A stretch of 64,000 nucleotides of DNA from Ruditapes philippinarum (lineage: Eukaryota), in the NCBI RefSeq assembly GCF_026571515.1, contig NW_026853239.1, positions 1 to 64,000 of the forward strand, in the 5' to 3' direction. Below are positions 6,032 through 55,809 of the stretch, piece by piece. Within the stretch, counting starts at the first letter, position 1, and each line of letters opens with the position of its first letter. Below the pieces are notes generated by a model. The model was given only the letters and a program-made list of their open reading frames with translations, was not told where the DNA came from and ran no database searches. The position numbers and the translations under genes were made by a program.

Positions 6032-9000
6032 CTTCGCCTTCTTTTTATTTCTCTTTACTTTAATAACCACGCCCAGATTTACGTTGCCATCAGTGTTTTT
6101 CCAGTCCTTTCCTTTAAACATTTAACTTAAAATGTTATAGCAATAAAAGTGATAACCAAATATTTTTATTCCAAACAAAAAGTAAATATTTTGTTCCAAA
6201 CAGCATATTATAAAAAATATTTTCTAATTTTCTTCTTAGCCAATCATTTTTGATTCATAGTATATCTAATAAGTCAAGTTCTATAATTTCTGGATTTGCA
6301 CAACCCAAAAATACGCAAAACAATATTTGACAACAACAGTTATAACATTAGATATAAAAAATTTTGACAGGTTATATGGCCCTATAGAAACAGTTTTTAT
6401 TACAAACAACCGTTTATATTCAGCAATATCATCTGTCCAAAAACTTTATAACGAATTTATAACACTGCAAACTTCATTCTTTAAAGGGAAAAGTCTTCAT
6501 AAATTGACCGCAGTCGTGTATATTATTAGTTATAAAGATTGTTGACATGTTATATGACCCTATATAAACGGTTGTTTGTAAATATAACCCGAGCCGCCAG
6601 GTAAGGGTTATATTGCAAAAAATCGTTTATATTCTGCCATATAACCTGTCAGACATATTTATAACGAATTTATAATACTGCAAACTTCCTTTTTAGAGAA
6701 AAAAGTGAGATTTCTATATAAATGGACAGCAGTCGTGTATATAAAACTATATAAACGTCAAGAATATCCAATGAAAAGTGACGTTACAAACGGACAGTAT
6801 TATAAAATGTAATAATAAACGTCAAGGTTATCCAATGAAAAGCGTGCAGTATTATGAAATGTTATAATAAACGTCACGATTATCCAATGAAAAGTGACGT
6901 TACAAACGGGCAGTATTATAAACGTCAAGATTATCCAATGAAAAGTGACGTTACAAACGGGCAGTATTATAAAATGTTATAATAAAGATATGTACCAGGT
7001 ACTACTTTACAACCAACTGCTATTTTCTCCCCTGGTTTAAGTTTTCTGGGTTCATCCACAATAAGTACGTCATATCCTAGAGGCCCATACATATAAACAT
7101 TTTGGTTTTCATCTGCATCCCATTCTATCCAAAGCTGTTGATCTTTAATAGGAAGAAATAAAACAAAGCGCATTGATACATCACTCATATTATAGTATGT
7201 TATATATTTGTAGCATTTACAGACTAAAGGCATAGAGAACATAGCAAGCAAATGAAATATGAGACAGGTAGTGTCAATTGATTTATAAATTGTTTGGTCA
7301 AGATAACCTTTCTATAAATGTCCCTTGCCCTCAATAGTGAAATATGAAATTAGGCAAAGCCTATGAACGGGGAAGTCTGTTAAAAAGTTAATTTTTCCGT
7401 ATTAAAAGTGTCATTCGGTATTATATAAACCGCTTCCGTTTTCACTCGGAATACTGAGTATTATTTATCCGAAAAGTTGCGATTGTCTGTTACCGGAATA
7501 TCCCGCGTATTATCATTGAATAACATTGAAAATGGCGCCGCCCGACTAGAACTGACACTGAAAATTTCATTGATAGGTATAGAATTTTATGTATTCTTTA
7601 ATTGTTTTTATTTGATTTTCTTTTAAATATACACATGTAGTCTATAGCCGGGCAAGTCAAAGCCCGGGCCCGCTTTAAAAGTCTATATTCCCCTTATGGC
7701 TGAGGGGTCACCTTTAATTGTTGAGGCTTAAGAAAAGCAGTCACTGTTTATCCCTGCGTGACCATAAGAGTACGCTCCCTTCGCAGCTTACTGAATGCAC
7801 TCACGCTTATTGAAACATTCGACCGATGCGCAGGAGAGTACAATAAGAGGTGACTAAACGGGTTTGAAGAACTGGAGTCTATGCATCTCTTAGCTACCGC
7901 AGATGAGGTGGTTTTGACCCATTGTGTTGTTTTAAAGTTTGTAACTCCTGAGATTTGCCAAAATCATCTTTACTTTTTCGGCTCAATATGACCCATTCAT
8001 TTTTACTGTGTCGGTGCACCGTAACCGAACAGTCAAACAAAAACTAGTCTAAAAATCAAAAGCAATAAAATGCTTTTATACTATTTAATACTTTTATACT
8101 TTTAATTTTTGTAGTTGGGGTTTACGTCCACCAACACACTAAAGGTCATGTGGCGACTTTCAAACTTTACTGATAGATAAAGACCTAAAGTGCCCCTCCG
8201 TGCATGATTTTAGTTATAAGGGGTTATATTAAAGGCACTCCACTTCCGTCAAAAAGTCTAAAAACATATAATTTGAATTTCTTACATAGATCAACTGGAA
8301 AACAAAACCGTTCCAACGCTTTTCAATTTTGGGTAATTTGGCACAATTAGATTTATTATTTTGGAGCAAATGATCTGAAATTTTGCACACACGCTTTTGG
8401 TCTAGACCTACATCAAATCGAATATTAAACCTCGAAAAAAATTATTTTCAGTTCCTTCAGAACAATGTAGAACTGATCTGTTTGACTTACCGTTATCAGC
8501 ATGCCCTATGACCGTTCCAGGGCCATTGCTATCTTGCTGTCTATAATGCCAGTCCGGACCTCTCCGTACTCGGCTGCCAATCGGAGGCAATGTCTTGCTT
8601 TTGGATTCGTGATAAGTATCTCTGTCGGGCCTATTTGATGTTCTGGCATTTTCATCATAATGTCGTTTGGCACTTTTCTGTATATTCATCAGATCTTCCT
8701 ATAGAAAATGAATATATAATTGTTTTACTAAAGCCTTTTACATTCTTCCATACTTTAGTGGCGACATATACGAATAACACAATTTGACCATTTCTACCGG
8801 TACACCGCCTGCTCTAAGCCAATCAGAATGGGGAATTTAATATCACATGATTAAAAATGGCCGACAAAAGATCTCAAAAACGGGGCGCCTACGGGGCACG
8901 CTATCTGCCACGTTTTTGACGGGTTACCTATGTTTTGAATTGTAATACTAACTTCATACACGAAGCTCGAAACCAGTGTGGTAGGCTCCTGCGGGGTAAA

Positions 9001-12000
9001 GCGTATTCGGAGTATTTTTCATACAGAAAAAAACATTTACTCTATTGTTCAGGAATGAGTCTATATGATGAAATGTTTTTCGAATACTCGGCTGAACGGC
9101 TAGTAATAGCATTTTTGGAAAGGATAATTCTTTTAACATTTAAACGAGCCGCCATATTGGTATCCTCAAATTCTGATGTCACAGTAGAAAACACACTCTC
9201 ACGCCACTAGAAATAGACCTGCAGACAGCGGGCGAAAGTATCTCCGGCGTTTTATTACGATATCGCCAGACGCCAGACATTAGTCGATATTTACCGATTC
9301 ATAGAGAAAAAACATTGGCGTGTAAAAGTAAAATATTATGAAGGGAACAAAGACAGTAATTTACACATTGGTAGCGGCCAAAAGGAGCACAAAATATGCA
9401 ACAATAGCCTTTACTGTGTTAGTCAAGCAGCAGAAAGATGGTAATAAATACTGTAACATCAGTCATTAATATTGAATCCTTTTCACTTTTATTAAAACCT
9501 TGGAACATTTTTCTCAAGTTTAATTTTCTTGAATTATTTTGAAACATCTGGGATTATGCAGCTTTAAAAAATAGCTTTACAGATGGTAGTCGTCATATGT
9601 CCTACCATATCAAACGTGTTAAAGATTTAGACATTCTTAATGGGATTGGCTGTAGTATATTGAATTTCAAAAGAATCTTCGTAAAGGTGACAGACTTTAC
9701 CAATGAATTATTTTGGCGCATCTCGGGACATGCAGCTTTACCATAGAATGTTCGAAAAATAGCTTTGCCGACGGTAGTCGTTATATGTCCTACCATATCA
9801 AACATGTTAAAGATTTAGACATTCTAAATGGCTATAATATATTGAACTTTAAAACTCTCTTCGTAAAGATGACGAACTTAACCGAAGTCGGATCGAATAT
9901 TCAAATGCCGAATGTAATGTTTGCATAACTGGAACGCCAGTAAGATTGGACATTACATGAACATCAAAAAGTATCATATAAAAACATTAATATGCAAACA
10001 ATAACGGTATTAATGTGTCTAAACGGTTCCAACAGAGTCTAGGTGTCTGTTGTATTGATAATTACCTTATCTTCGCTGGAAAGGTCATAATCAGAACCAC
10101 GTGTCTGCGTGCCAGCAATAAGGCCTAATGGATCTAGCAAGCGTGTCTGAAATTTAAAAATAATTGAGTCACGACAAAAATGATCTTCAAATACGTTTTA
10201 AAAAATCAGTTAGTATCTCAATTATGAATAATGATCAAAAATCAAAAAATGATAATAGTAATATATGAGTAAAAGAGTAACAAGGAAAAGCGGTATGTAA
10301 GAAACGCTGCCGGATAACATTGAAATGGCAAAACATTGTTACCCTTGAGGTCGTACAACACCGCAAAGTAATAAACAAGAGGGCCATGATGGCCCTAGAT
10401 CGCTCACCTGACCCATCAAACTCATCCGAACAATTACCTAGACAAGCATTATGACCAAGTTTCATGACAGGTGAGTCAAAACAGTAGCCACTAGAGTGTT
10501 AACAAGATGTTTCTATTTTTAGCTCATGTGACCTAGTTTTTCATCGAGATGACCCATGTTCGAACTCATCCGAGCAATGACCTAGACAAGCATCAAAACA
10601 AACTTTCAGACCAATTAACAGGATATTTGGATCACAAAAGTAGCCACTAGAGTGTTAACAAGATTTTTCTATTTTTAGCTCCTGTGACCTAGTTTTCTAT
10701 TCGAGATGATCCATGTTCGAACTCATCCGAGCAATTACCAAGACAAGCATCCCGACCAAGTTTGATGACAATTGAGTCAGAAATGTGACCATTGGAGTGT
10801 TAACAAGGTTTTTCTATTTTTAGCTCCTGTGACCTAGTTTTTCATCGAGATGACCCATGTTCGAACTAATTCTTGCAATTACCTAGACAAGCATCCTGAC
10901 CAAGTTTGATGACACTTGAGTCAAAAATGTGACCTCTAGAGTGTTAACAAGGTTTTTGTATTTTTAGCTCCTGTGACCTAGTTTTTCATCCGAGATGACC
11001 GATGTTCAAAATGATTCAAGATTTTACCTAGACAAGCATCCTGACCAAGTTTGATGATGATTGAGTCAAAAATGTGACCGCTAGAGTGTTAACAAGGTTT
11101 TTCTATGTTTAGCTCCGGTAACCTAGTTATTCATTCGGGATGACCCATGTTCGAATTCATGTGAGCTATCACCTACACAAGCATCCTGACCAAGTTTGAT
11201 GATGATTGAGGCAAAAACGTGATCACTAGAGTGTTAACAAAGTTTTTCTATGTTTAGCTCCGGTGACCTAGTTTTTCATCCGAGATGACCCATGTTTCGA
11301 ACTCATTGGAGCTAACACCTAGACACGCATCTTGAACAAGTTTGATGATGATTGAGGCAAAAATGTGACCGCTAGAGTGTTAACAAGGTTTTTCTATTTT
11401 TAGCTCCGGTAACCTAGTTATTCATTCGGGATGACCCATGTTCGAATTCATGTGAGCTATCACCTACACAAGCATCCTGAGCAAGTTTGATGATGATTGA
11501 GGCAAAAACGTGATTACTAGGGTGTTAACAATGTTTTTCTATTTTTAGCTCCGGTGACCTAGTTTTTCATCCGAGATGACCCATGTTTCAAAGTCATTGG
11601 AGCTAACACCTAGACAAGCATCCTGACTAAGTTTGATGATGATTGATTCAAAAATGTGACCGCTAGAGTGTTAACAAGGTTTTTCTATTTTTAGCTCCTG
11701 TGACCTAGTTTTTCATCCGAGATGACCTATGTTCGAACTCATTCGAGCTATTTCCTAGAAAAGTGTCCTGACAAAGTTTGATGATGATTGAGGCAAAAAT
11801 GTGACCGCTAGAGTGTTAACAAGGTTTTTCTATTTTTAGCTCCGGTGACCTAGTTTTTCATCCGAGATGACCCATGTTCATACTCATCCGAGCTATCAAC
11901 TACAGAAGAATGCTGACCAAGTTTGATGATGATTGAGGCAAAACTGTGACAGCTAGAGTGTGAACAAGGTTTTTCTATTTTTAGCTCCTGTGACCTAGTT

Positions 12001-15000: not shown

Positions 15001-18000
15001 AGATGAAAAAAGCCATAAATCTGTACATTTAAATTTCTTGAACCCCGAGTTAAATTAATCAAAGGGCTGCAAGCTCTGTCAGTGGTATTATCTGATCTTT
15101 GCAATCTAAAGCGTACTGTATATCTGTATGTATTTTCCTGTATACGTTTATTTTTTTATACTATAATTCATCTTGCAGGACACCGAGATGCAGCGACTGC
15201 ATTTAAATTTTTACTATAACAGTTTTAGTTTGATACATACAGAATTTTGCATGACTAGAGTTGCATCAAAAACTTATTTATGTTCATTTTTTTATGACAG
15301 CCACATTTTATCCTTGCATATCGTGACTACTTCCTTAAAAAGACACTTAAAGAATATATAAAAAAAATAGATGCCTCGACTGGGATTTGAACCCCAGACC
15401 TCTCACACCCAAAACGAGCGCAACGTGGAAGTTATGAATAAAATCAAATAATTCTTAATTTAGAAATTCCATTTAGGGTTTGTAATCCTTATTAATTTGA
15501 CGTATTTTGTTCACGATAAACCTGTTGTTTAACACTGATGTAAATAATTTAGCGAAAGTCTCGCGAAAACAGTCCGACATGAATATACTCCACTACTCGA
15601 CAGTCAGATTTAGTTGTGTAATACGCTCTGAAGTATTCGGTAATCGACATCGCTGAAAATAGCATTTCCATTGATTAAAATGATATTCATCCGCGTAATT
15701 TGTGATTGTGCATTTATTGACAATTCTATAAGCCAACGCTACTTTTAAACTTTGAATGCGTTGTTATTTGTTGGATATTTGTAACAAAATTAGAATATTT
15801 CTTTCTTTTACATCGCTAGTTTTAAGCTGTTTTTAGAACTAATTGTTGTTAGGTTTGTCGTGAAGCGCTGTGCCAGAGATTGAATGTCAGCATTGTATTT
15901 CCTGATCTGCGATCAGAAAATACAAAAACCCGATCAAATAAACGAAACTGGAAAAAAAATAGACAAACAAAATATTATGATTCAACTTATACAATTTAAA
16001 TGTAAGTCCTATAAATTATATAACAAAAACAAAATTACGTCATTTAAAATGATGAGGCTTAAAACTTTGTGTCGACTACCATTGATATACTTAAAGGCCA
16101 ATCACGCCTCAGAAAGGAATATATTTTTCATTCTTTAGAAAGGGTAAACACGAGTTATATAATGTTTAAACAACGGATTTAGAACATGTTAGATGCATTT
16201 CACCAGCAGAAAATATTACTGAAAGTGAAATTATTTGTTATAAGTAGTATTTTGACTTCCATACGAAATACTAAATCACTAAAATAGTAGTAATTGCCAA
16301 AAATGCAACAGAAGCAAAAATAGATCAGTAATTTGCATATGNNNNNNNNNNNNNNNNNNNNNNNNNNNNNNNNNNNNNNNNNNNNNNNNNNNNNNNNNNN
16401 NNNNNNNNNNNNNNNNNNNNNNNNNNNNNNNNNNNNNNNNNNNNNNNNNNNNNNNNNNNNNNNNNNNNNNNNNNNNNNNNNNNNNNNNNNNNNNNNNNNN
16501 NNNNNNNNNNNNNNNNNNNNNNNNNNNNNNNNNNNNNNNNNNNNNNNNNNNNNNNNNNNNNNNNNNNNNNNNNNNNNNNNNNNNNNNNNNNNNNNNNNNN
16601 NNNNNNNNNNNNNNNNNNNNNNNNNNNNNNNNNNNNNNNNNNNNNNNNNNNNNNNNNNNNNNNNNNNNTTGGGGTAACAATAAGCCACTATACCAAGGTC
16701 TTTCTCAATATCTCTGTAATCAGCTGTGTATCCAACTTGAATTTTCGTCTGGTGCCCGAATGTTACCAAAGCTACATGTTCGGTGTATAGATCTCTCGAA
16801 TGAGACTTTGACATATCTTTAAGACCTGAAATGATGTAAAAATTCAACTGTAAAGCATTATTTTTCATATATACCTCCTTATGCGTAAATGAAACATATG
16901 AAATAAATATATATTTTCAACTATGATTAGATTTAATAAATGGATATATACGCACACGACAAACATGTGCCATGAGACAAGTTTTCACAGAAATAGTATA
17001 TTGGTTTATTTTAAGATATTTAGTTACTTATATTTCGATTCACGCATACGTACGTCCTTGCCATTTAATGGCACACATAAGGTACCATGTGCATGGTCGA
17101 ATCTTGTATCTTAGTTTGGAGACTTAACAATTGAAAACGTGTAAGAGTTAAATCGTATACCAATACATGCACAGTGTGTTAATTAACTGGAGTGTAGGTA
17201 TTAGTTACCCCCACTCACTGTCTGTTTAAAACATGCTCATTCATTCGCTCATTTTTTCTGGGGTTAACGGGAAAGAGATAATGATAGAGAAGTCATATTC
17301 ATATGCTCGTACTATGGTAACTTTTCTCTGGGGTTTAATATTAAGAAAAGTGTTATTATTTTTGTCTTTGATACAAAAGAGATAGAACATCAAAACACTC
17401 TGCAATCTGATTTATACTCGGGGCTATGACATAACATGAAATTGCATCTATTAAAGCCTTAAAGTTTAATTAACTGTAGACATCGTTATTGCGTTTTGCC
17501 CTACGCAAAATGCGCATGCGCGAAATGCAACATTCGTTGCTATGGAAAATCGTATTATAAAAAGGTCTATACTCGGGGCTATGCCCCATCGTACAACTCA
17601 CATAGTATGGTGTTTCGATGCTCCTTCTATTTCTAAACGCATCTAAATATTGATTCTCATATAAGTGCATACATTAGCGTTCAAACGCTTTAGCAATCAT
17701 GTCAACCCCTCGTCTACTAAATATATGCAACGAAAAACCCTGGATTACATGTTTTTCGATTTTTAGCTTTACGTTTGGGCTGCCGTTTCAATTTAGAAAC
17801 ACCTGTCAAAAAGTCGGTTTTTAAACTTCGAGCATCGTCCATCCTCTGAGGCGGGCCCTACTTTTAGATTATTCCAGGGAAATACTGAATACATCTTCAA
17901 GAAGCATATAACGGCAACGATCTGAAAATTACCAACAAACTATAATCTTGAGCATGTAATCAACTCGAATTGTATGTACGGAATGAAACTATGATAATCA

Positions 18001-26837: not shown

Positions 26838-28081
26838 TTAATGTAAAGATAGGACCAATCGTTTGCTCACATACAAGACCTTAGGGTAGGTCATCAAACA
26901 GGCACTTCGATATATATTTAAAAAGAACTATAGTTGTTAAGAGTTAATTGCTTCACAATTTCCACGAAACTGAATTAGGAATCCCAAAGAAACACCATGT
27001 ACCCGGCCTAGCTATTAGATATAAATATATAGAGTATTTTTAAAAGATAAGAAGGGGAAGAACACCTCTCCCCAAGTTGTGAAATGAACTTTTAAGAATA
27101 CCAATGTACAAGTGATGACCAAAATGACAAGAATGTGTATAGCTATCACTGTTCATCTACATGTAGATACATCTCAGCCCAAAAGATTTTGCTAACCAAT
27201 ACAGTCACACTGTGATAAAATGGTCCACCTTTAAAGTGAAATCGGAAACAGCGTACACTCGGTTATAAGGAACACTAATCTTGCGCTAGGTTCCCATTTT
27301 CCTCTTTCTCTGTCTTATATTAAGATCTATATTTACAAAATAAAAAATGTATTAATGTTTATAGATTTTGAATGATTTATGTTTGAAACATAAACGATAT
27401 AAAAAAATAAAACTACGTGCAATAATAAAAGTGATAAAGTCATGTATCCAGTATGTACTACAGTAGTATATCAACATAAAACCGTTGTGATTTGTTTTTA
27501 TAAACGTATCATTTCATTTTAAACCCGCAAAAAACGCTTGCAAACGTCATGTCTATATATTGATAATGTTATACATACTTTGTTCTTTTGGCGACGCCGG
27601 AGAGCGGCGTCGTCTCTTATGGAATGCTTTTTTATTTTCGCCTATGGAAGGAGCTGTTATTATTAGCAGTTAATGTCATGTTGTGTTAATTAGTTTTAGT
27701 TTGTTGTTCTTCATTAATGCTTGTCATTTTGTTTTTTTGAACACTAATATTGTAAATGGCTCATTTCATATCTAGAATTATGGCATTGTTTCGTCCACTT
27801 CTTGTGAAAATAACTAAGGCGTGAGTTTTTATAGTGTTAAATACATGTAAAAACAAATGCCTTTCCTTTTTATAGTTGCACATTCTTTGGCTGTAAATAA
27901 ATCCCTCCCCCAAAAATATGTAACACATTATTTTCCTCTTAAGCTTTCTTACTATGTTAAAGGAAATATTACTATCGAAAATGATAGAAAATTGCACAAT
28001 AGATCAAGGGCAATGTTATAACGTGTATCCCATGACAAGGAAGGGATCAAAAGTTGAAAATATAATATTTAATATATAAAT

Positions 28082-28444
28082 TATGATGGCTGATTTGGTA
28101 CACTTTGCGTGTTGCGTTGTCGACAGCGACAACACAACCTATATCGTTATCGCCTTTTCGTCTTGACGTCTTGTCGCTAGCGAAACGCACCAAACGGCCC
28201 GTTGTCGTCTTGTCTCTAGCGGCGCGTTGTCTCAATGCCGCCCTGTTGCTTGGACATGTCGCCAACCCTTCGAAATGAGTCGAATAACAATGTGACATCG
28301 CGACAACAAGCCGCACGACAACGCGCCGTTTGGCGTGCATCTTTAGCGACAAGATGAAAGTCCGACAACGCGCCGTTTGGCGCTTTGTCGTGATTTCGCT
28401 AGCGACAATACAATACACAAACGCGTTCCAAATCAGACACCATA
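28082..28444. mobile_element. GC-rich MITE (related short copy at ~53422-53544)
   Basis: TIR TATGATGGCTGATTTGG / CCAAATCAGACACCATA; internal GCGACA/TGTCGC repeats. Confidence 0.8.
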
Positions 28445-30543: not shown

Positions 30544-30793
30544 TTTTCTACCATTGCTATGTATTATCCACCATAAGTTCAACATAAAAGAGACAGAAAC
30601 TTATCTCCATTAGCGTAAAATACATGATTGTCTACATTGGATTAAATATGTAAAACACATACAAATGAATACCACTCATTTAATTTTTATTTTTATTTGT
30701 TTATGGTATATTTCTATCAATCTATAATTCATAATTTAAGGTCAAAAGACATCCAGTGTTCACTAAAAGAGATAAAAACTGTAAGTGCAACCA

Positions 30794-42700: not shown

Positions 42701-45700
42701 CTTACTACTTTCTTCTAAATACAGTCAATACACACAATTACAAAAGAGAGCATTTTTAATCATAAGCACATAGAAAGAGTCGTGGTATGGAAATTTTCAT
42801 ATTTTAATCGTGGCTACCACCACTCATGAAATTTCATTTTTCATTCCACTTGATATAATTATCAGTTTTCAATCAGAAGAAGAAAAAAACATAAGAAAAC
42901 TGTAGTCATATGGAAATACATTTTAGATAAACAAGTTTTTAGATTTTGAAACATGTGATCTCTAACAAAATGACCAAAATGTCCAGAAAATAAAACAATT
43001 TTTACCGACAAACAAAGAAGCACCAATAGAAAGTTGTTAATTGCTGACGTAAACCATAAATAAAATTCGACAAATAAACAAAGGTTATATAGGTAAACTT
43101 CATTCAACCTTATAATTAAGCTATTTGATATCAAAATAATCAAAATCCTGTATTTATAAGAAAAAAACTGAATATCCTCAAAATCAATCAATCAATCAAT
43201 CAACTATTGAGTCAGCGAGTGACACTATAATCATTTAAACATGCAGGAACCTGAAACTAATTAGTTTTTCCAGGAAAATTTATAAGAACAAATAATATAC
43301 AAGCAAATAGCATAAATATGTGAAGTCAGAAATAAATAAAAGATATGATTTTTACAGACGAAGGCAAAGATTTTACAAGAGATGGAAGGTTTTAGAAGGT
43401 CACAGAGAGACGTGTTCTTTGTTCCCGTTGGAAATTTAGATCTGGTACAATATGTTTTATCTTTCACAAATTTGTATAGGGATGTGTATAATTTGAAAGA
43501 TTATGTAAATTATATCTGAACTTTGTTCTAAAAATCAAGCAATAATAGTTTCTATCATAAGAGAGATCATATTGTTGTACAAAATTAGAAAAGAGCATAT
43601 TTTCTCAGGGTTTTACAAAAAATTGTGCCGTCCGTTGATAGTCTTAAAAAAGGCTGCGGTGTTTTGTTGTTTTAGTTTTAAAATTTATGCCATGAAGTGA
43701 TACAACATATCTAATTGTTTCGCCTGTTTGTTACCATCGATATTTGTGCATTATTTTGATTATTTTTTATTTATTGTATTTTTTTCATATTGGCTGTTTT
43801 AGGATTTCATAAATACAATGGCAGCTTGTTGTGACGGCATGCTTCTGGATCATACGTATGGGACACGGTTCTCAAGAAGACAGTTTTTGACAGTTAGTAT
43901 TTCTTCCCTATCTCACTTGGTTGCGTATAAATACTGCTCACGTGATCTCAAAAAATAGTTCACGTGACCTTAAAAATAGTTCGTCCTTAGAACGCGTATG
44001 AATCATCTACTTTTGTCAATCCAGCATCATATGACGAGGACAATAAAAAATATCTACTTTACATCATTATAATTCAGTAATAAAATATTTTGCTTGTAAG
44101 AGTGAAAATAGTAGAAAAAAAACTAAACCAAGTTGTGAAAGTAACTCCATTGAGGTACAAAGGTCTAAATTCATAAAATTTGAATTTCCAACAAAGATCA
44201 GCTGTGGCACTTAAAGCAGAAATATATGTAGAGTGTAATTAAGGGATATCCTTAGAAATTTATTGAAATCGTATTTTTGAGCTATTCTCATCCAGATTTG
44301 AGTGAACAGCGTTGGAATGCTTTTTAACTTTGGTCATTTTTCAGAATTAAAATAATTATTCCCTTTAATTAACATACAAATAGAGATTCCGCTGTTAGTC
44401 AGATTTCATAGTTTTTTGGCCAAAGGCCATCTAAATTCAGCTTGTTTGACTTCCTGTAAAACTTATAGGGTAGAACTGAATGTAAGAAGAATTTGATTGG
44501 TCATTTAAAATTACAAATTTAAATCTGGGAATCCCATTGGTCATCCAAAGTTAAAATGTAAGGGATAGTTCTTACCATTTTAAAATAAGTGTTAAGGATA
44601 GTTTTAAAATAAAATGTATATGATGGTTTTTGCGCATTAGAAAATGTAAAGGATAGTTCTAAAACAAAACGTACAAGAGTATGCAAATTAGCCAGTTTTA
44701 ATCCGGCTGAGTACTTTTTTAAAGACATTTCCTGTTTATAAGACCTTCTTCTGAATTTCAGAAGCAGCTGGCCGATCCATCTGGCATGATGACGGACGAG
44801 TTTACACATGGTTCAGACCACAAGCTTTCTAAGGAAGACATGGTAATGTCAGTGTATTCAATTCTTTCTTGCATACCAGACAGGATTATCTACCGTTTAC
44901 ACCGGTGCTATAAAAACCTGTCTTACACCCGCCGTGTAAGACAAGTCACGTGCATTCAATGACGTCACTCCCGCTCGCCTTTAATAAATGAATTGCGTTA
45001 TTTTGCCTCTGAACCGGCATCAGGTGTAAAATATTTACAGTCTAATATATTTCGATTTTGAACTTGCTGATTGGGAAACGCCGCTACAACTACATTTCAA
45101 ACACAAATTTATCAACTTAACACTTCCTGGAAACTTTAATCAAATCTACATGGTAAAGCATTCTTAGAATTTCGATATTTGATGAAGTGTTTACAAAAGA
45201 TATGAAAATAGAAAACACTTTACCTTTGCTGACAGCTGATTCTAGCGACATGCACTGTGTGTATACGATTTAACTCTGACACATGTTCAACAGAAATGCC
45301 CCCAAACTATGATACAATAATAATGTTTACACAACTTTGCAGGAGGATATGAGGAGTATACAGGAAAGATTCAAACGTCACATAGAAGAACGTGCTGAAA
45401 TTGTTGACGGCAGAAACATGTACGAGGAGAAAACTAGCACTACATTACCGGAAATCGGTTGCCGCGTTCGACGTGGTCCCGATTGGCAATACAATAACCA
45501 AGATGGCAATGGTCCTGGGACAGTGATAGGCCACGACGATGATGGTAAATCTATATCATTATTGTTTGCTTAACGTGACATAAGTTTTGTTAAAAAAATA
45601 TTGTATCTGATTGTCTCAAGGTTGATAATTTTAGTTCGACTATTCGGGGGAATAGGGAGATCTATTGTACTCACCCAGTCGTCGGTGTCTAACTTGGGTA

Positions 45701-48700
45701 AAGTTTTTGCGTGCAAGTTGGTACCTCAAAAGATTATAAAAGGAATGGGTTGAAACTTCACATACCTATTTAGCAGCATAATAAAAGGTCACTATCCAAG
45801 ACCCATAAGTCCATCATGTGCTTTGACAGAACTTTGGCCCCTTTTTGGACTAAACGCATTCTTCATTATCCAGGCTCTTGTGTATAACTATCAAGCAGAA
45901 AAGTCGAACATGCTGTCCCATGGACAGCTCTTGCTATTGATTAAGTAATATTGTTAGGTCTTGTATTTAATTTCACGTTTAAACTGATATTATTATACGT
46001 TTATACTATTATATGTTTAAAGCTTTTTAAGGCACTGCTTAACATGCAGTAATATATCGTAAATGTAGCAAAATGTAAAGAAAGAAGTACTTTGTCTTAG
46101 ACACAAAATGCTTATTCACTATAATTATCCCAATTGCCAACAAAGCAAAAGAAACAATTATATTTCATCTATATGCCACATGAGTATTTTTGGAAACTGT
46201 TACAAGATATAAAATATAAAATGGTTTTGAGAGAAGTAAAAATGATAGCATTTCTGAGGCATAATTGGCCTTTAAAATCCTCTGATAAATAACATATATT
46301 TCTTACAAATTATAAGCAATTAAAATTTCTGAAAAATATTGGTTCAAATAACGTTTTTAATACATACCCGTGCCGATTTTGCAACTCTGTAAAAATGGTA
46401 TTGCACGGCCGTGCATATATTTTGACGTGACGTCATTTTCGTCATATAAACATAGCGTTATGACGCGCTAAATGTTAACGTTATACTTTAGGCGCGTCAA
46501 TGAAAAATGTTTCTTTAACACTTCAAACCGTCTTTATTTTGGATATGTGTAAATAGAATTTTAAATTCGTGTTAGTTCATTACTAAATTTATTGAACTCG
46601 TTAAAAAAACCAATATTATGCTCGCAAGAGGCTCGCATAATATAATTTTATTCAACTGGTTCAATAAATTCGGTATTACACTCATTCAATATCCTCTATA
46701 TAATAAAACAAATTATTTTTTCACAAAGATTACCATGTATGGTGTGAATGGGATAATAATGGGTATAAAAATATATACAATTACGGTCCAAGGGCGTACA
46801 GCGTACTTGTTGTTGACGAGCCGAGGATCCTAAAACCAGGGGAAGTAATCGCTGTTGGATGTCAAGTTGTTCCAGGTTTGTAGCGAAATCTTCATTTTGG
46901 TTTATAGTTATTGATGAAGTAATATTTTTGAAAATAGAATAAAAATAAACAATGACAAAAAAAATCAACAATAAAAAAACAACATACATTTTTTATATTG
47001 TCATTATATTGTGTCGCCTGCCATATAAATTGGGATTCCCGATTAAAGAAATTTAGCCGAGTTATGGCCCTTGAATAATGAAAAAACAACAACATTTCGG
47101 CCTGTAAATAATAGTTGTGCCTTCTGCTACACATGTTATCACTGGTCGCTCTTGATGTTTTGTTTTAAATAATATGAGCCGCGTCACGACAAAACCAACA
47201 TAATGGGTTTCCGCGCAGTCTGATCAGGATCCATGCTGTTCGCTATCAGTTTCTCTACTTGCTATAGACTTTGTAATGCGGCGTTCACACAGTGCCGATT
47301 ATGGCTCCCGTTTGAGATCAGACAGCGCTACGACACGAAAAGCGGATTACTATCCTCAATGGTCTGGAATGTCCTATCATTGTCTGAACGCAGTCGTATA
47401 TGTTCGTAACAGAGTCCAACGGATCGGGAATGGTCCGAAGAGGTCGGCCAAGCACTCCCGACAGTTAGATGCGTCCCGTAACATTCGGGAAACTCAGCCG
47501 ATTTTGTCTAGTCGGATTACAATCGTGACTATGTCGTGACAGATTCTGCTGTATCGGATCAAAATCGTAACAATGTCCTGTGTTGTCTGGTCAGTGTCCT
47601 GTGGAACGGGCATGATCTGGAGAAATTTTGCATTGCCGTTTCTTGCCGATTGAGTCCAGATTGCGTCCAGATCTTGCCGAATGCGAACCGTCTTTGCCGA
47701 ATCCGTTCCGGAACAGTTCTGTAATTAATACGAAATTCGGCAATAATACCCACGTCAGAGTCACGACAATTACAGAACACGATACGACTGAGTCCAGACA
47801 AAGGCGTGTGCAATGCGGTACAGCAGACTGTAATAAGATTGCGTTCCGGCAGTGTCCCGATCATCCCGAATATGGCGACAGTTGTAGGATTCCAGATGCA
47901 TGGATTTCCAGATTCGGCTGAGCTGCTCACGTATGGAGTATAACGTGTGTGTGTGTCATTCATTGACAGTACTTTGATCGGTCCACCATGAATGCTGCTC
48001 GTAGACGGAGACTTCTGCAGCAAGTTGCTCTCATGGAAATGGAAGAAGAAGAAGACCTTCTGTTTGGCAATTATTATTTGAACTGAAGGGCTATGAGACC
48101 CGGTAGAAATAGAAGATACTGGGTCAAGCCCTGGATATACAGAAGGGAACAGCTCGGCCAGTATGACACATTGATGAGGGAGCTGAGAGAAGAAGATCCA
48201 GAAGCTTTCATCAACTACATGAGGCTGCCCATGGAACTATACGATGAAGTCCTGGCTCGGATCACACCCCGCATCACCAAATCAGATACCTGGTGGAGGC
48301 AAGCCCTTGATCCAGGACTGAAGTTTGCCTGTACCATGCGGCATCTGGCATCCAGCGACAGTTACAGCAGCATAAAGGGGGACTTCAGGGTTCCCAGTAA
48401 CACCATGTCAATGTTTGTCCCTGAGGTCTGCCGAGCCTTCATTGATGAGTACGCTGCATCTACCTGTCCCACTACCCAAGCAGAGTGGAAGGAAATCGCA
48501 AATGAATTTCTCCGCAGATGGAACTTCCCACATGTGTGCGGTGCATTAGACGGAAGCACGTTGCGTGCAAGTGCCCACCAAATACCGGATCTACCTAACA
48601 TAACTACGAGGGCTTCTTCTCCATAGTCCTGATGGCCCTCGTAGATGCGGACTATAAATTTATTTGGCTTGATGTTGGGCCAGATGGAGCAGCTTCAGAC

Positions 48701-51700
48701 GCACAAATATACAACGAGTGTAAGCTGAAAGAAGTCCTTCAGAACAAGACCATTGGCTTTCCTGATCCTGAGCCACTTCCTAGAGATGATAGAAATATGC
48801 TATACTTCTTTGTTGCTGACAATGCCTTTCAACTGAGAACTGACATGATGAAGCCTTTCTCTTTCCGTAACATGACAGTAGAAAAAAGGATCTTTAACTA
48901 CAGGCTGTCAAGAGCACGCAGAATTGTGGAAAATGCGTTTGGCATCTTGGCTCAGAGATTTCAAATACTGTTGTCAACCATGCAACACACTCCTGACAAT
49001 GTAAGAATCATCGTACAGGCTTGTGTCTGTCTCCACAACTTAATGAGAATACGCTACCCAAGCATGAACATCAACCAGGTTGATCGTGAAGATGTCAAGG
49101 ACGCAAGGATCGTACCCGGAGAATGGAGATTGGGGCCGAAACATGCTTGACGTTGTCAATGTTCAGGGTGCTAACCGTGCAACAATACAGGACAAGACGC
49201 AGAGACAATAACTAAAACATTATCTTAACTCTGCCGCTGGATCAGTACCTTGGCAGATGAGGATGATCAACCCTCGCCGTAAATGAAGACCATATAATTA
49301 TTGACAGAATACTATGCTATTATGTGTCACATCTTGTATGTACCATTGGCTTTTAAATAAAACAGCGGAGTTTAACTTGTGACATTACTTATTTGGTAGC
49401 AAAATAAAATATTGTTTAATGTTTATTGAAATTTATTTTATTTATGAATGGGTAAACTCCTAGTTTGGACTACTTTTTAATTAAAGGCAACTTGTTTGGC
49501 AAAAATTTAAAGTTAAAACACAATATATTTTTACCGTGAACACGTGAAACGGTTTTCTAACGGATGTCTTCCGTCAGAGTCGGTTCATTGTCTGGTCACT
49601 GTCTGATCTCTGTCGGATCGCATTCGGGAGAATCGGGACGCTGTCGGGACAGATTCGGTCGTTTTTTACCATGACAAAGATACAAATCGGATCAGAATCG
49701 GATTGAGAACGGGATAATCGGGACGAATTCTGCTGGAAACGGCTGGATCGGGACGCCTCCTGAACAATATCTGATTGTTGTCGTGATTAAATAAATGTTT
49801 TTACAAATTTTAATAAAAGTTTGAATTTCCAGCCACGAATCACAGGATCTTGATCAGACTTTTGACACATTTTAATCGGGAATGGTCCTATCAAAGACGG
49901 CAGTAAAAATCCTGAATGTGTGACTTAGGCTTAAGCGAACAGAGTGGATCCTGATCAGATTGCGTGGATGAGCAGGTTGGTCTGGATCCATGCTGGTCGC
50001 AAACCCATTATGTTGGTTTTGTCGTGACGCGGCACAATTATTATGTTGAGACGTCAATGAAATTATCTGCAAAATTTCATTATTTTCAGGTAAAGATTGG
50101 AAAAATTCTGAGGGCAATGTAGATAATGGTGTTGTTATCAAATTAGACAAACGAGCAAACTCTGTGTTGGTAGGTTAAACGGATTTCTTTTTTCTTCTGC
50201 TTACGAAATTGAACTAGGAAAATTGTTTGTTTGTCTATTCATGTAAATCCTGTTCATCCTGTTTTTAATATGTTTAAAGGAACTCCACTGAGGTTAAAAG
50301 AAAAAATAAGAAAAGAAATAAAAACAACTACCAAAGGATCGAAACATAAAAAAAATAATTTTCTACATAAGTCTTAAACTTAAAACCGAAAGATATGCAA
50401 GAGATAATTAAGAAATGTACTCCGAAATAGATTGTGAAATCGAAAACAACAACAAGAAAAACCACCACCAACAACAAAACTAACAAAAATTACGACAAAT
50501 TCGCCCAAGAAAATAACAAATCATGGCGGAAAACAGTCAAGGGGATGTAACTCTGCAAATACTTAAACAAGTATATAATCCGATAAGATGCCGTACAGAT
50601 ACCGTAACAATGATCTCTGTCATACGTTGAGAACATCATACCATTATGATATCGAAGAGCATCTCTAGCAGTTCCACTGTATCCACTCACCTCAAGTTTG
50701 TAATTGTCTTCTTCTGGATATATCTTAAACTTACTGTACTTAGCATATGCACTGTTTCCCTCAAAATCTTCAATCTCTATTCGAAGTTCGTGTTCTCCAT
50801 CCGATGTCAGTAGACTCAAATGATCATTACCGAGCCAGAACTCATCATTGAGATCACCGAAACCGTTTTTATACTCATTCCAGTTTCGATAAAAATCTGT
50901 TTCTCCGTTCAGTCTTCTTTGAAATACTATCCAGCCTCCACCGTCTGTAGTTTGGTCACAGTAAACTACAGAACCTTGTCGTAATTTCTTTATTCCATTT
51001 CCTGCATTACCCATAGCTGTTAACAAACGACAGGAGGTAGGATAGAATAGATACTCCATTTTCGAATATAAATTAGTTATTAGAGTTTCAATGTTTTCAA
51101 TTTGTTTGGTGTTTTGCTTAACCTTTTCAGCCATATTTTGTAACACTTTCCGGTCATTTTCAGACGTTATAATAGCGTCTTCTGACACATGTTTGACCGT
51201 TTCAAAGCTGCTTAATAATTGATCAGTATTATTTACAGCGACTTTGCAATAGTTTTTAACATCTTTGTTGAGGGATATCAGATTGTTTTCAATCTTTGGA
51301 ATTTCCCGTCGAAATCTTACAGACTCAGATTTTTCCTCGGTGAAGGCTGTTCTAAGTCTCGTAAAATCCTCTTCCAATGTGTCAACTGTTTCAAAATTAA
51401 TCTCATCAGCTTTGGTCGCCGCTGAAGGAACGGGCTGTTGTTTTCCAATGGTTTCATTTAACAATTTATCGATGCCATTCAGTCGCATTGTTATTTCAGC
51501 AATATCTTCGTCTCTGATTGTAAATTCGAAGTTAAGTCTAGTTTCTAAATGTTTGACAATTGACCTTAATCGATCAAGTTCTCTTGTTGAACTTGTCAAA
51601 CAAATGACAGATACCATGAGAAGAAAAACTTTTACTTTACCAAATTACTGCATATTCCTATTTGTTTTCAATTGTTCTTAAAGCTAGAACACACGATTCG

Positions 51701-53346
51701 TCTTGATATGATCTATGATTATTTTCTAAACAACTTGAAACAATCCCAGTTCTTTATTAATAAAAATAAATTTTAAGTTGATACCGTTTGTTCAATATTC
51801 ATTAGAATAATGGTGATAAATGTTATCGTCATACATTCTTTATATTCCTAAATCTAAAGAGCCTTATTGTTCTTTTGTGCGTGTTTCTTTTTCAATTATA
51901 TTAAGTGGGCACTTTATTGCTCTTAGTTTCAAATTGGGTGTTTGCTTTTTTCTTGCCTCTCAAAAAGAAAGAATACTCTTTATTCGAACAAGTAGGAGCC
52001 AATTACATTATATGTCTTACGTTTTAAGTAGATGTACTTATTGGATGTGGTACAATCATATAACTTACGCTTATCTAATAATAACTAAATTACACAGAGT
52101 AAAATGTTATGAAAATGTGCAGTCATTATAGCCAAATCTAAAAAAAACTTTTTTTTTGTTTTTACATAATGTCGCTTATTTTCAATGTAAATTTTTACCT
52201 TTGCCTACCACTTTACAATACATTGTATATATAAATGGTCCAAGAAACAGTAAATTTGCACATTTTTTTCATAAACAATTTAAAACAAATTTTGTTAAAT
52301 AACTCCAGAAGACTGTGAGTAATTTCTCAGGAAACGTATATTTTAATCAAAGCACAGAAGGCGCTGAATTTGTTTGGGTCTCAGAATGTCAGAAAGGTGA
52401 AGGTTGTGAGATTATAAACCAATTTGTTTGTAAAGTGTCACCAAATTCTGTTTCCAGTGTTATAACTATAGTAAATTGACTATAAGACTAATTACAACAC
52501 TGGTATTCAATTCAAGGTTTATTTGGCTTAGTCAAAAAAAAAAATAAAAAACAAAAAAACATGAGTTGGCTGAACTGGGATTTGAACTCCGGACCTCTCG
52601 CTTCTAATGCGAGAGTGTAAACCCCTCGACCACGGGGTGTTATAAGACAACAATCTGAAGAATACCATATTATTTTTAATTAGAGTTTGTAACCCTTATA
52701 AATTTCCATATATTTTGTTCATGTTTAACACTGAAGTAAATAATCATGGAGCTGAATATAAGCATGTTTATCTATAAGAATAAGACAATATTAGAAATCT
52801 TCGACTATTTTTTTCGTTACGAAAATTAATGCGCCTGTCATTTGACTATCTTTACACAGTGATCTCCCCTTAATTTTTCGGTGTTAATGTACATATGAAA
52901 GGAAGTAACCGCTTCGAGGAGTTTGGACTACTTTCGGCATTTGCAAATAATAACATCAGGGTCTGAAATTCCGCTACCATTATTTGTTTGGTCTGACGAC
53001 CCAAACAAATAAAAACAACTATGTGGAGTCCCCTTTAAAGGTCAAAGAAAGGAGTACATAATGTATAGTTGATGACACTCAGTATAATGTTAAGGTTAAA
53101 ATATCATAAAAATTGTTTATCTAAATATTTTCATTACAGGTTCGATGGAATGATGGTAGAAGAGGAAATTATTCTTACGGGGCTGATGGGAAACAGGAAG
53201 TTCGTCTGAAAACAAATGCTCTAAGGAGGAAAGTTACTTTCAATCAGTCATTGAATTTCAAGAGCGCAGTTCCTGTAAAAATAAGTTATCACATCGACTC
53301 TACATTAAGTCCCTTTCTAAACAATGAATATATATGTCTTATATAG
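30794..53346 (+). CDS. Gene B: multi-exon coiled-coil + VWA + 2x MIB/HERC2 domain protein (~630 aa), paralog of gene A
   Basis: Phase-compatible GT-AG exons: 30794-30852, 31665-31693, 31991-32179, 33723-33855, 35186-35226, 36164-36247, 37705-37827 (VICIDISESM, MIDAS DxSxS), 38878-39003, 41239-41316 (KLGGPSQMFGG), 42247-42374 (KIIVITDGRAT), 43358-43444 (FFVPVG), 43803-43892, 44762-44842, 45343-45544 ([26 protein letters not shown]), 46729-46875 (VWCEWD..YNYG..AVGCQVVPG), 50090-50169 (KDWK..GVVI), 53140-53346 (VRWNDGRRGNYSYGADGKQEV). Start and C-terminus are uncertain. Confidence 0.9.
31113..31448. mobile_element. Kolobok-like MITE, family 1
   Basis: TTAA TSD, TIR AGGGACTCCACTGAGG. Confidence 0.9.
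32232..32430 (+). mobile_element. tRNA-derived CORE-like SINE
   Basis: CCGAGTGGTTAA A box and the shared core with the 29612 copy. Confidence 0.8.
32453..32714. mobile_element. TTAA MITE family 2 (other copies at ~16091-16341, ~46060-46275, ~55040-55190)
   Basis: TTAAAGGCCC/A termini, shared TCTGAGGCAT and ATGGAAGTCAAAATACT segments. Confidence 0.6.
33860..34880 (+). repeat. (ATCAT)n-type microsatellite, interrupted by a SINE
   Basis: ~740 bp of ATCAT/GTCAT/ATCCAT units. Confidence 0.95.
34399..34676 (+). mobile_element. Full-length tRNA-derived SINE (Meta/MESC-like core, tentative) with 12-bp TSD
   Basis: A box GTGGCCGAGTGG, B box GGTTCGAATCC, (AAAC)n tail, TSD ATGTCCACATCA at 34387-34398 and 34677-34688. 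Confidence 0.92.
35250..35643. mobile_element. MITE with internal TTCAACTTCACGAATTCACGA repeats
   Basis: Imperfect TIR TACGGAAGACCAGTGGGGTCATTT / AAATGTCACTATCGGCCTTTCGT. Confidence 0.7.
36340..37020 (+). mobile_element. Longer copy of the 17115 repeat family
   Basis: Same termini with an extra internal GC-rich segment. Confidence 0.7.
37838..38395 (+). repeat. ~105-bp tandem duplication followed by degenerate ~24-bp tandem repeats
   Basis: CTTGAAAAAAATAGTTCCTACTTT x2; AAATTAGGTATTCAGAGTGAACA-like units. Confidence 0.7.
38410..38780. mobile_element. Dispersed AT-rich repeat (copies at ~28448-28615 inverted and ~42610-42860)
   Basis: Shared TTTTCACTGCAGTGAAA and CGTGGCTACC.CCACTCATGAAAT..TTTTCAT.CCACT.GAT. 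Confidence 0.65.
39004..39221 (-). mobile_element. tRNA-derived SINE abutting a gene B splice donor
   Basis: Minus strand CCGCCTCCGTGATCGAGGGGTTAGAG..GGGTTCGATCCCCGG.. and an (AAAC)n tail. Confidence 0.75.
39264..40345 (+). repeat. ~130-bp direct repeat pair (39264-39400 and 40219-40352)
   Basis: GGTATTCCTTTAGGGC..TTTGTCTTTACTGAGC.TGTTCATTTAAAATAAA..GACTGGAGCAGTACTATA.ACGCTTGCAGAAAT. Confidence 0.8.
45628..45935 (-). mobile_element. Short HINE-like element
   Basis: TTTTAGTTCGACTATTC..GAATAG hairpin, GTCGTCGG stretch, terminal GCTGTC..GACAGCTCTTG. Confidence 0.6.
47277..49931 (+). mobile_element. PIF/Harbinger DNA transposon (2655 bp) with TAA target-site duplication
   Basis: TAA at 47274-47276 and 49932-49934; imperfect termini TGCGGCGTTCACACA / TGTGTGACTTAGGCT; GC-rich subterminal ATCGG/TCGGGA motifs; it splits a MITE at the site that is intact at 30311-30543. 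Confidence 0.9.
47988..49286 (+). pseudogene. Harbinger/HARBI1-family DDE transposase, disrupted
   Basis: ccaccATG at 47988; in-frame TGA at 48084; motifs YWVKPW, FINYMR, WNFPHVCGALDG(KH; -1 frameshift at ~48554), NYEGFFSIVLMALVDADYKF, FFVADNAF, FNYRLSRARRIVENAFGILAQRF, CLHN; another frameshift at ~49140; C-terminal YLNSAAGSVPWQ. Confidence 0.93.
50278..53034. mobile_element. Composite TTAA-flanked Kolobok-like element (2757 bp) enclosing the FReD sequence
   Basis: TTAA at 50274-50277 and 53035-53038; termini AGGAACTCCAC / GTGGAGTCCCCT. 50278-~50445 matches the left half and ~52910-53034 the degenerate right half of the ~340-bp MITE family in this window. Confidence 0.6.
50490..51653 (-). 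pseudogene. Fibrinogen-related (FReD; ficolin/ANGPTL-like) coiled-coil + FBG domain sequence, intronless, 3'-truncated, nested antisense in a gene B intron
   Basis: 375-aa ORF 50490-51617 with FBG motifs VYCDQTTDGGGWIVFQRRLNGETDFYRNWNEYKNGFG, EFWLGND, YKLEVSGYSG, HNGMMFSTYDRD. The GGWWY..C..NLNG C-terminal part is missing. The in-frame upstream ATG at 51653 is followed by TAA at codon 3 (MQ*FGKVKVFLLMVSVICLT, signal-peptide-like). Confidence 0.85.
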
Positions 53347-53967
53347 GAAATAAATACAGAAAGGGAACTTTTATCACTTGAGGTTGTTTATCAAAGGCAG
53401 TAAAACCATATATGAGATTCTTATGGTGGCCTTTTCATGCCATGTCGTATTTTCGCTCCGCGTAGCAACAGGAGAAAACATAAAAATATTTCGCCTGACG
53501 CCCAGCGGACCAAAAAATACAATTAGCACAAATCAGCCACCACAAATTAGGTTTAACAGTTGTGAGTTTGTCTATCAGATTTCGGTATTGCACTGGACAA
53601 TGCACAAAAATCTCATACTATCATGTGGCAGCACATGTCAGATCCTTTTTAGATCAAATACTGGTATCCTGGTCAAAGTCAGTTGTATACAAATATACAT
53701 TTAAATGTGAACTTATTTCAACGAATAAAAGTCATTCTAAAACTTTCTTAATAAATAGATTGCAATGATCTGCACTGATTTTCTTTTTAAAAGTGATGAA
53801 TTGTTTTGTTTAGATTGAAAGATTGATAAATCCATTAAAGATATTAATTGTGATAATGATTTATTTTGTCTGATTAATCAATCATTATACAACATCAATC
53901 AGTTGTTTCCTAACTTAATATGATTCATAACAAAATTATGATTTAGTATGAAATTCATACATTGCAG

Positions 53968-54109
53968 AAGTGACAACGAACAAAGACCTCCGAGGAAACT
54001 TCCCTCGTCCGAGGAATGGGAGATGCCTCGAGCTATGACCATCGAGGAGTTTGAAACCAAACAAAACAAGAACAAAAATAAAAATAAGAACAAGAACAAA
54101 AACATTTAA
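53968..54109 (+). CDS. Possible terminal exon of gene B (SDNEQRPPRKLPSSEEWEMPRAMTIEEFETKQNKNKNK...*)
   Basis: Good acceptor cattgcag| and a GC-richer open frame to TAA at 54107-54109, but no strong phase-2 donor was found in the preceding exon. Confidence 0.4.
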
Positions 54110-55792: not shown

Positions 55793-55809
55793 TAACGAAA
55801 CTATTGCCA

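Follow-up and report, generated by a model that had tools for sequence, protein, structure and literature searches.

The first 64 kb of the Ruditapes philippinarum contig NW_026853239.1 (C1726 below; assembly of 1.41 Gb), which we call the window, are AT-rich (~30% GC) and carry two predicted genes, A and B. Gene B runs on the plus strand from an ATG at 30794 to a stop at 54109, gene A runs on the minus strand from ~23180 to 5250, and the two lie head to head with ~7.6 kb between them. The exon pairs were traced by comparing stop-to-stop pieces of the left half on the minus strand with those of the right half on the plus strand, and exon borders were fixed by requiring AG acceptors and GT donors common to homologous positions. 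There are 11 colinear exon pairs common to A and B. The initial annotation of this DNA had described two divergent genes with matching exon lengths and phases, and the nine lengths that it listed are reproduced exactly (29, 84, 78, 128, 87, 90, 81, 147 and 80 nucleotides (nt) in both genes, with identical phases and AG/GT flanks); the unequal pairs measure 123/119, 126/132 and 202/208 nt in B/A. Its further observations on the pair agree with ours: exon f is identical at 20 of 29 amino acids (aa) by direct count, the introns of A and B share no colinear DNA match and only dispersed repeats align, the Cys-x-Cys junction is present with a Cys codon split by an intron in both A (22613) and B (30852), and the helix motif that precedes the VWA domain is found in both genes (VKQDVKRVYDGDRHWR in B). 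As set out below, A and B are very probably the products of an ancient duplication, arranged head to head, in a family of intracellular proteins without enzyme domains that extends across the molluscs. The domain order begins with Cys-x-Cys and a long helix, continues through a charged linker predicted to be disordered and a second, short helix to a VWA domain with a complete metal ion-dependent adhesion site (MIDAS; D-x-S-x-S, S/T, D), and ends with a helix, two MIB/HERC2 domains and a (Lys-Asn)n tail.

The predicted model of gene B consists of the following exons, where P0010 is the Mercenaria protein XP_053403712.1 and E is the expect value.

30794-30852, plus strand: first coding exon (MEKRIDDLPGPDEVHNKCA plus the TG of the split Cys codon), predicted from its ATG, open frame and TG-GT donor, completing Cys-x-Cys with the next exon
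31665-31693, plus strand: 29-nt exon (C-NHNNTKLQK-D), AG/GT, phases fit, resembles NHRTDTLST of Mercenaria P0162
31991-32179, plus strand: coiled-coil exon, 189 nt, tblastn to the N-termini of P0151, P0162 and P0080, phases fit
36164-36247, plus strand: pre-VWA helix exon, 84 nt (VKQDVKRVYDGDRHWR), A/B comparison, open frame
37705-37827, plus strand: MIDAS exon, 123 nt (VVICIDISESM), tblastn to P0010 residues 251-296 (E 2e-9), AG/GT
38878-39003, plus strand: VWA exon c, 126 nt, P0010 tblastn, open frame
41239-41316, plus strand: VWA exon d, 78 nt (LGGPSQ; MIDAS Ser/Thr), P0010 tblastn, A/B comparison
42247-42374, plus strand: VWA exon e, 128 nt (IVITDG; MIDAS Asp), P0010 tblastn, A/B comparison
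43358-43444, plus strand: VWA exon f, 87 nt, A/B comparison
43803-43892, plus strand: VWA exon g, 90 nt, A/B comparison, open frame
44762-44842, plus strand: inter-domain exon h, 81 nt, A/B comparison, open frame
45343-45544, plus strand: exon i, 202 nt, a helix and the first half of MIB/HERC2 domain 1, Pfam MIB_HERC2 (E 5.5e-6, profile positions 1-25)
46729-46875, plus strand: exon j, 147 nt, end of MIB 1 and start of MIB 2, P0010 tblastn, A/B comparison
50090-50169, plus strand: exon k, 80 nt, middle of MIB 2, A/B comparison, open frame
53140-53246, plus strand: exon l, 107 nt, end of MIB 2 (VRWNDGRRGNYSYGADGKQE), tblastn to P0010 residues 633-669, MIB_HERC2 positions 42-64 (E 0.07)
53968-54109, plus strand: last exon (EEWEMPRAMTIEEFET, a (KN)n tail and the stop), homologous to the P0010 C-terminus

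Between 32180 and 36163, where the linker should be encoded, the model has no fixed exons; this region includes a long tandem repeat, degenerate and read as ISYH-type peptide repeats in all frames (33800-35000, plus strand). From 36164 to 54109, the 13 exons join into one open frame of ~490 codons with AG/GT borders throughout, which reads, in order, VKQDVKRVYDGDRHWR; VVICIDISESM, LGGPSQ and IVITDG; VWCEWD...YNYG; VGCQVVPGKDW...VRWNDGRRGNYSYG; and EEWEMPRAMTIEEFETKQ(NK)n followed by the stop. The MIDAS of B is complete, with DISES, GGPS and TDG in one open frame at alignment columns that show no or almost no variation among 53 relatives, and the MIDAS exon gives a weak match to Pfam VWA_2 (profile positions 1-28, E 0.21). 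Single exons score below the MIB_HERC2 (PF06701) gathering score of 33.5 bits (26.6 for B exon i, 24.2 for A exon i and 13.5 for B exon l) because introns split each domain. The two barrels of B are ~15 residues apart (VVDEPRILKPGEVIAVG), with no Cys/His cluster between them. The N-terminus of B (MEKRIDDLPGPDEVHNKCAC) has no hydrophobic stretch, in keeping with the earlier reading that a signal peptide is absent, and the long N-terminal exon of the A type, when sought in B, was not found.

The earlier proposal that the proteins lack a ligase domain is borne out: B stops at 54109 in a tail like that of P0010, the downstream frames hold no RING or HECT domain, and neither do the 53 relatives. 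Indeed, a search for RING, HECT and WWE domains in the 10 open frames downstream of B (54110-58400) gave two sub-threshold chance matches only. The (Lys-Asn)n tail (KNKNKN) also ends P0010, P0163, P0080, P0165, P0083 and P0056, and is seen in Ruditapes, Mercenaria, Mya and Dreissena; the A-type copies are without it, and no (KN)n tail exon was found downstream of A or of its paralogs A' and A''. In family members the tail may be a localization or polybasic signal.

Gene A follows the same plan on the minus strand, A' being its intact paralog on contig C15588.

23169-23180, minus strand: candidate start exon (MDDK-GTAAG), a regular-expression match like the MEQK, MDLR and MDDE starts of relatives; tentative
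22613-22716, minus strand: N-terminal exon (with the TG of the split Cys codon), tblastn to P0162 residues 5-39 (E 3e-6)
21709-21737, minus strand: 29-nt exon, length, phase and AG/GT match with B
21212-21349, minus strand: coiled-coil exon, 138 nt, tblastn to the N-termini of relatives
20226-20714, minus strand: open frame with a large charged low-complexity linker exon, borders approximate
near 19509-19535, minus strand: small exon encoding a 10-residue peptide, comparison with relatives
18625-18708, minus strand: pre-VWA helix exon, 84 nt, A/B comparison
17803-17921, minus strand: broken MIDAS exon (...SISLE*SKSR...), 119 nt, aligned with A' (C15588 4120-4242) and B
16694-16825, minus strand: VWA exon c, 132 nt, P0010 tblastn, donor 25 nt before the assembly gap
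16342-16668: assembly gap (N), inside the A intron between exons c and d
14837-14760, minus strand: exon d, open, AG/GT
14206-14079, minus strand: exon e, open, AG/GT
13742-13656, minus strand: exon f, open, AG/GT
12999-12910, minus strand: exon g, open, AG/GT
10146-10066, minus strand: exon h, open, AG/GT
8698-8491, minus strand: exon i, open, AG/GT, Pfam MIB_HERC2 (E 3.2e-5)
7142-6996, minus strand: exon j, open, AG/GT
6111-6032, minus strand: exon k, open, AG/GT
5250-5346, minus strand: degenerate terminal exon (GGKNGKTCSFFI*), conserved Trp gone, early stop, indels versus A' and A''

The low-complexity linker proposed earlier is represented in A by the long charged open frame, which is very probably the linker exon. 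The nine exons c to k form a single uninterrupted frame and are constrained. The MIDAS exon, in contrast, is damaged: it keeps its AG and GT, but measures 119 rather than 123 nt and carries a frameshift and three stops in the expected frame, where the intact A' reads VICLDISESMADSDGW. Its identity to A' is 83.7%, versus 89-99% in the other ten exons, which suggests that it has drifted like non-coding DNA. The terminal exon reads GGKNGKTCSFFI* versus VRWNNGKRGSYMYDD in intact paralogs; A' and the two copies on contig C925 retain an undamaged A-type terminal exon (VRWNNGKRGSYMYDDIQQ), and no intact version was found in A by regular expression. A MIDAS and a complete second MIB domain are therefore both beyond the coding capacity of A as assembled. 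The initial annotation had placed the MIDAS motifs (DISES / GGP[ST] / TDG) in both genes and had concluded that both copies were kept under selection. B does have the complete site, and GGPT and TDG are kept in A (GGPS and TDG in B), but the DISES exon of A is broken; likewise, B is intact and nine exons of A are constrained, but the MIDAS and terminal exons of A are damaged. A is a recently disabled copy (possibly refreshed by gene conversion), a MIDAS-less working copy, or a local assembly error. A MIDAS-less splice variant of A is conceivable, since skipping of the 123-nt exon keeps the frame.

The assembly gap begins 25 nt beyond the GT donor of exon c (exon end 16694). Its flanks (17054-16669 and 16341-15925) are colinear with C15588 4470-4852 and 4962-5402, and the C15588 stretch between these counterparts contains no exon. 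Exons c and d of A map to contiguous residues of P0010. Together, the contiguity of c and d on P0010 and the exon-free counterpart on C15588 indicate that the gap does not interrupt the coding sequence.

To place the pair among known proteins, we used B exon i as a phmmer query against 1.84 billion representative proteins, which gave 456 matches; at least 65 of the 150 representatives listed have the family-specific VWA domain upstream of MIB. A homolog search with P0010 returned 5 close relatives only, its candidate list being saturated by low-complexity words. Furthermore, tblastn of P0010, P0162 and P0080 matches every core exon of A and B in order. In full-length relatives, Pfam finds VWA or VWA_2 and MIB_HERC2 above cut-offs, many of them with a C-terminal WWE domain, and MIB_HERC2 scores 35-146 bits in colinear relatives. 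Among 53 aligned members, MIB_HERC2 is found in 53, VWA_2 in 51, VWA in 49, WWE in 26 and RING/HECT in 0; no ZZ domain and no chitin-binding or other extracellular module was found in them. The WWE domain in half of the family goes beyond the first reading of the locus, and shifts the likely context towards poly-ADP-ribose (PAR)/ubiquitin signalling. The subgroup of venerid clams to which B and A belong lacks WWE, with B stopping at 54109, and no WWE match was found on the window contig, C15588, C925 or C14834.

Every named member is a mollusc protein annotated as "uncharacterized". Members occur in bivalves (Mercenaria, Mya, Dreissena, Ruditapes, Sinanodonta, Potamilus, Solemya, Mizuhopecten, Argopecten, Magallana, Ostrea, Saccostrea and Mytilus) and gastropods (Haliotis, Littorina and Babylonia), the ESM Atlas contains two mollusc clusters with the VWA-MIB/HERC2 architecture, and the UniProt automatic name of one scallop relative is HECTD1. 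In the 53-sequence alignment (P0010 numbering), D265, S267, G337 and D377 are invariant and S269 is nearly so, which makes the MIDAS the best-conserved feature of the family. Two relatives are annotated with additional domains beside VWA-MIB(-WWE): P0038 (Potamilus streckersoni KAK3608719.1) has a protein kinase and a Ribonuc_2-5A domain (RNase L/IRE1-type), and P0133 (Sinanodonta woodiana KAL3866450.1) has an SH2 domain. If the fusions are real, they hint at a role in signalling or immunity; otherwise they reflect gene models that were merged. The top-scoring matches to the MIB exon (P0001, P0002, P0004 and P0005) have 7-10 tandem MIB/HERC2 repeats, and P0001 is from the metamonad protist Kipferlia bialata (GIQ80540.1).

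The structure was modelled on P0010 as a proxy for B, with the 53-sequence alignment. AlphaFold predicts a helix (residues 18-86), a disordered segment (86-209), a VWA domain (222-470), a second helix (486-509) and two beta-barrels (528-590 and 600-655), with the VWA domain and both MIB barrels mostly above 90 in predicted local distance difference test score (pLDDT). The family profile matches the MZM-REP region of MIB1 (4xi6, E 1e-23), the MIB domain of HECTD1, VWA domains, and the WWE domains of DTX1 and TRIP12. Foldseek finds the VWA domains of Rpn10, CMG2, BatB and TFIIH p44, as well as MIB1. Taken together, the profile and fold searches relate the barrels to MIB1 MZM-REP and HECTD1, and the VWA domain to generic VWA domains (Rpn10, CMG2/TEM8, BatA/B, TFIIH p44 and collagen VI). 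The architecture proposed for both genes at the outset (coiled coil, linker, VWA-MIDAS and two MIB/HERC2 domains) thus stands for B and the full-length relatives, but not for A as assembled. Full-text literature searching found no paper on a VWA-MIB/HERC2 protein, in line with the earlier statement that this architecture has no functional description.

The duplication is old, as the initial annotation had supposed. Between A and B, the nonsynonymous rate (dN) is 0.33, the synonymous rate (dS) is saturated and dN/dS is ~0.1. In the maximum-likelihood tree, the venerid sequences form a clade (100/98) with A and A' sister to the rest, and B groups with Mercenaria LOC123554779 (93/94, moderate support). 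This grouping places the A/B split before the divergence of Ruditapes and Mercenaria, with which the saturated dS agrees. Between A and A', dN/dS is 0.26, and the terminal branch of A has 9 synonymous and 6 nonsynonymous changes in exons f to k, where ~30 nonsynonymous changes would be the neutral expectation.

The pair had been described as a substrate-recognition system, and as a two-gene system it did not hold: it belongs to a multi-copy cluster of the mollusc-wide family. Matches to the family lie on at least 10 contigs of the genome, with three genes on C14834. On C15588, the intact A-type gene A' and the 3' half of a B-type gene lie tail to tail, and the A-side flank of this contig extends to the very start of the window contig. 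The B-type gene is that of P0161 (XP_060577707.1, Ruditapes philippinarum), which C15588 encodes at 88-100% identity per exon and which is 78-90% identical to B at the protein level. C925 carries another A-type 3' half and an inverted partial copy. Both contigs (33.5 kb for C15588 and 18.4 kb for C925) match parts of the window at 75-92% identity but order their genes differently, and their further copies mean that A and B do not stand alone as a two-gene unit. Either inverted duplicates have built up a cluster here, or very divergent haplotypes have been assembled. One 88-Mb chromosome record of Mercenaria holds four paralogs whose LOC numbers are neighbours.

A non-coding block is also conserved among these copies.

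3871-4398, minus strand: conserved non-coding block in the 3' flank of A, with counterparts in the B flank (55843-56343, plus strand) and at C15588 14939-15703

The block is ~530 bp long and lies 0.8-1.7 kb downstream of A, A' and B; the genome has only three full-length copies of it. A and B are 73.5% identical over 551 nt of it, with long invariant runs, although their introns cannot be aligned and dS is saturated. Towards its distal end, ~190 nt are similar to a dispersed repeat. The block may represent either a constrained element of the 3' untranslated region or a gene-conversion tract. An Rfam search of the whole window found no match.

The closest known proteins are P0010 and its Mercenaria paralogs (LOC123554779/80/81), which are homologous to the window genes exon by exon over 11 exons at 43-70% identity. 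They share with them the N-terminal Cys-x-Cys and helix, and with B also the (KN)n tail, the MIDAS and both MIB domains. Beyond these, the family at large (in scallops, Solemya, unionids and others) differs in that about half of its members have a C-terminal WWE domain, which neither window gene has, and in that A is damaged. Outside the family, Mind bomb 1 and 2 (MIB1 and MIB2) have the same two SH3-like MIB/HERC2 barrels, as seen in the MZM-REP profile match and by Foldseek; the clam proteins, however, lack the ZZ domain between the barrels, the REP, ankyrin and RING regions and any ligase domain, and have a VWA domain upstream. HECTD1 and HERC2 also contain homologous MIB/HERC2 domains (2dk3, 3dkm, E 1.6e-16), whereas the clam proteins are without HECT, ankyrin and RCC1 domains and have two barrels rather than one. 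Among the nearest VWA structures are those of Rpn10/PSMD4 and TFIIH p44/Ssl1, which are likewise cytosolic or nuclear, but have partner modules of their own (ubiquitin-interacting motifs or zinc fingers) and are 12-17% identical in sequence. The VWA domain of Rpn10 is not known to have a complete MIDAS. The plant RING ligases RGLG and WAV3 use an intracellular VWA/copine-like recognition module together with their own RING in the ubiquitin pathway. They differ from the clam family in this RING, in having no known MIB/HERC2 domain and in their unrelated lineage.

What these proteins do may be approached by analogy with their modules. MIDAS sites coordinate an acidic ligand residue, and WWE domains bind iso-ADP-ribose. 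The MIB/HERC2 domains of MIB1 bind Notch-ligand tails (PDB 4xi7 title). We tentatively propose that the family members act as non-catalytic multivalent adaptors in ubiquitin/PAR-linked signalling, a role to which we give somewhat less than an even chance. One partner would be gripped at the MIDAS through an acidic residue, a second would offer a short linear motif to the MIB/HERC2 tandem, in the manner of Mind bomb 1, and the WWE domain of the relatives that bear it would read PAR. Clients would in this way be delivered to, or withheld from, signalling that depends on ubiquitin/PAR and that separate enzymes perform. By the same analogy, the N-terminal helix may oligomerize, for which a complex prediction with two copies of P0010 residues 1-95 (score 0.24, mark 0.32) is evidence neither way. 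Judged from sequence, an enzyme-less family with this adaptor mechanism is the best explanation as a whole, although it is still rather more likely to be wrong than right. Several points weigh against it: the mechanism draws only on domain analogy, exon-level Pfam searches of the window find VWA at E 0.21 at best, the second MIB domain is divergent such that Pfam sees one stretch only in P0010, and the PAR link may not apply to the window subfamily, which lacks WWE.

Other readings of the same proteins must be set beside it, and the adaptor, immune or stress-sensor and Mind bomb decoy readings are overlapping alternatives. In a lineage-specific family of stress or immune sensors, the VWA/MIB surfaces would recognize a pathogen or damage ligand, oligomerization would signal and copy turnover would reflect an arms race. 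The many loci (at least 10 contigs, three genes on C14834), the four Mercenaria paralogs on one chromosome record, the inverted and tandem duplicates with one damaged copy, the kinase/2-5A-type RNase and SH2 fusions of P0038 and P0133, and the restriction to molluscs in all samples seen would fit such a role. However, dN/dS values of 0.1-0.26 indicate ordinary purifying rather than diversifying selection, the fusions may be gene-model artefacts, and we consider a sensor family unlikely. Less probable again is a decoy or competitive inhibitor of Mind bomb-type ligases, whose ligase-less MIB tandem would occupy MIB1/MIB2 motifs and dampen ubiquitination. The homology of the tandem to the MIB1 MZM and the lack of a catalytic domain in all 53 members (0/53) are in its favor, but the VWA domain with its invariant MIDAS and the frequent WWE domain argue for more than a passive decoy, and, as no ZZ domain separates the barrels, the proteins need not have kept the specificity of MIB1 for its motifs.

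Two further explanations are largely excluded, and we regard each as very improbable. The genes could be fragments of a larger E3 ligase gene with RING/HECT exons further downstream or missed, as might be expected from MIB/HERC2 domains being otherwise known mainly from E3 ligases and from the scallop relative auto-named HECTD1 in UniProt. Against this, the frame of B closes with a stop inside a tail that is conserved in proteins of Mercenaria, Mya and Dreissena, 54110-58400 contains no ligase-like match, and RING/HECT is found in 0/53 relatives. The proteins could also be secreted VWA matrix or adhesion proteins, since molluscs commonly have shell-matrix proteins with VWA domains. No signal peptide is seen, however, at the N-termini of B, P0010 and P0162, MIB/HERC2 and WWE are cytosolic or nuclear domains, and extracellular modules, chitin-binding ones included, are absent from the 53 members.

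MIB/HERC2 domains are familiar almost exclusively from E3 ligases, in which they bind substrates, and here they are joined to a VWA domain without a ligase domain, in a family that spans dozens of members in bivalves and gastropods, half of them also with WWE. The genes belong to a catalogued but unstudied mollusc family, of which they form part of the WWE-less subgroup, and combine known modules in an uncharacterized architecture that is unsurprising as lineage-specific domain shuffling. Because the predicted proteins are already public as "uncharacterized", the novelty lies in function and not in the existence of the genes. The present value is modest: a corrected model of gene B, recognition of the damage in A, and a family with testable residues (MIDAS D/S/S/T/D and the MIB grooves). 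Were the proteins adaptors or sensors, they would represent a new type of reader for ubiquitin/PAR signalling, and could help to explain lineage-specific gene expansions in molluscs. A broader idea, which we hold to be improbable as it stands, is that they form a mollusc-specific class of non-enzymatic readers that couple a MIDAS-bound client to ubiquitin/PAR signalling, with clusters expanded and turned over for innate immunity or stress sensing. If so, the window would contain one working gene and a constrained copy that has shed its MIDAS, possibly a natural MIDAS-less regulator, and would also show a conserved 3' element common to paralogs whose introns have diverged beyond recognition.

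The window contains several other elements, most of them within or close to gene B. In its j-k intron, a GC-rich island holds two adjacent open frames (48093-49150, plus strand), the second of which (48632-49147) encodes a DDE_Tnp_4 transposase of the PIF/Harbinger type (E 4e-22). The k-l intron contains, in antisense orientation, an open frame of 375 aa without introns that has a fibrinogen C-terminal domain (50493-51617, minus strand, E 3.6e-49). A palindromic repeat resembling a miniature inverted-repeat transposable element lies directly upstream of the B start exon (30314-30610), with copies at 47178-47276 and 49934-50039 in the j-k intron, one of which ends ~50 nt before exon k. Matches of 28050-28879 with 38450-38808 and of 30314-30563 with 49934-50039 were considered as exons and rejected, as they align in several frames and are dispersed repeats. 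Downstream of B, a 388-aa open frame (58403-59569, plus strand) encodes basic PRVKPEAE-type repeats and has no Pfam match.

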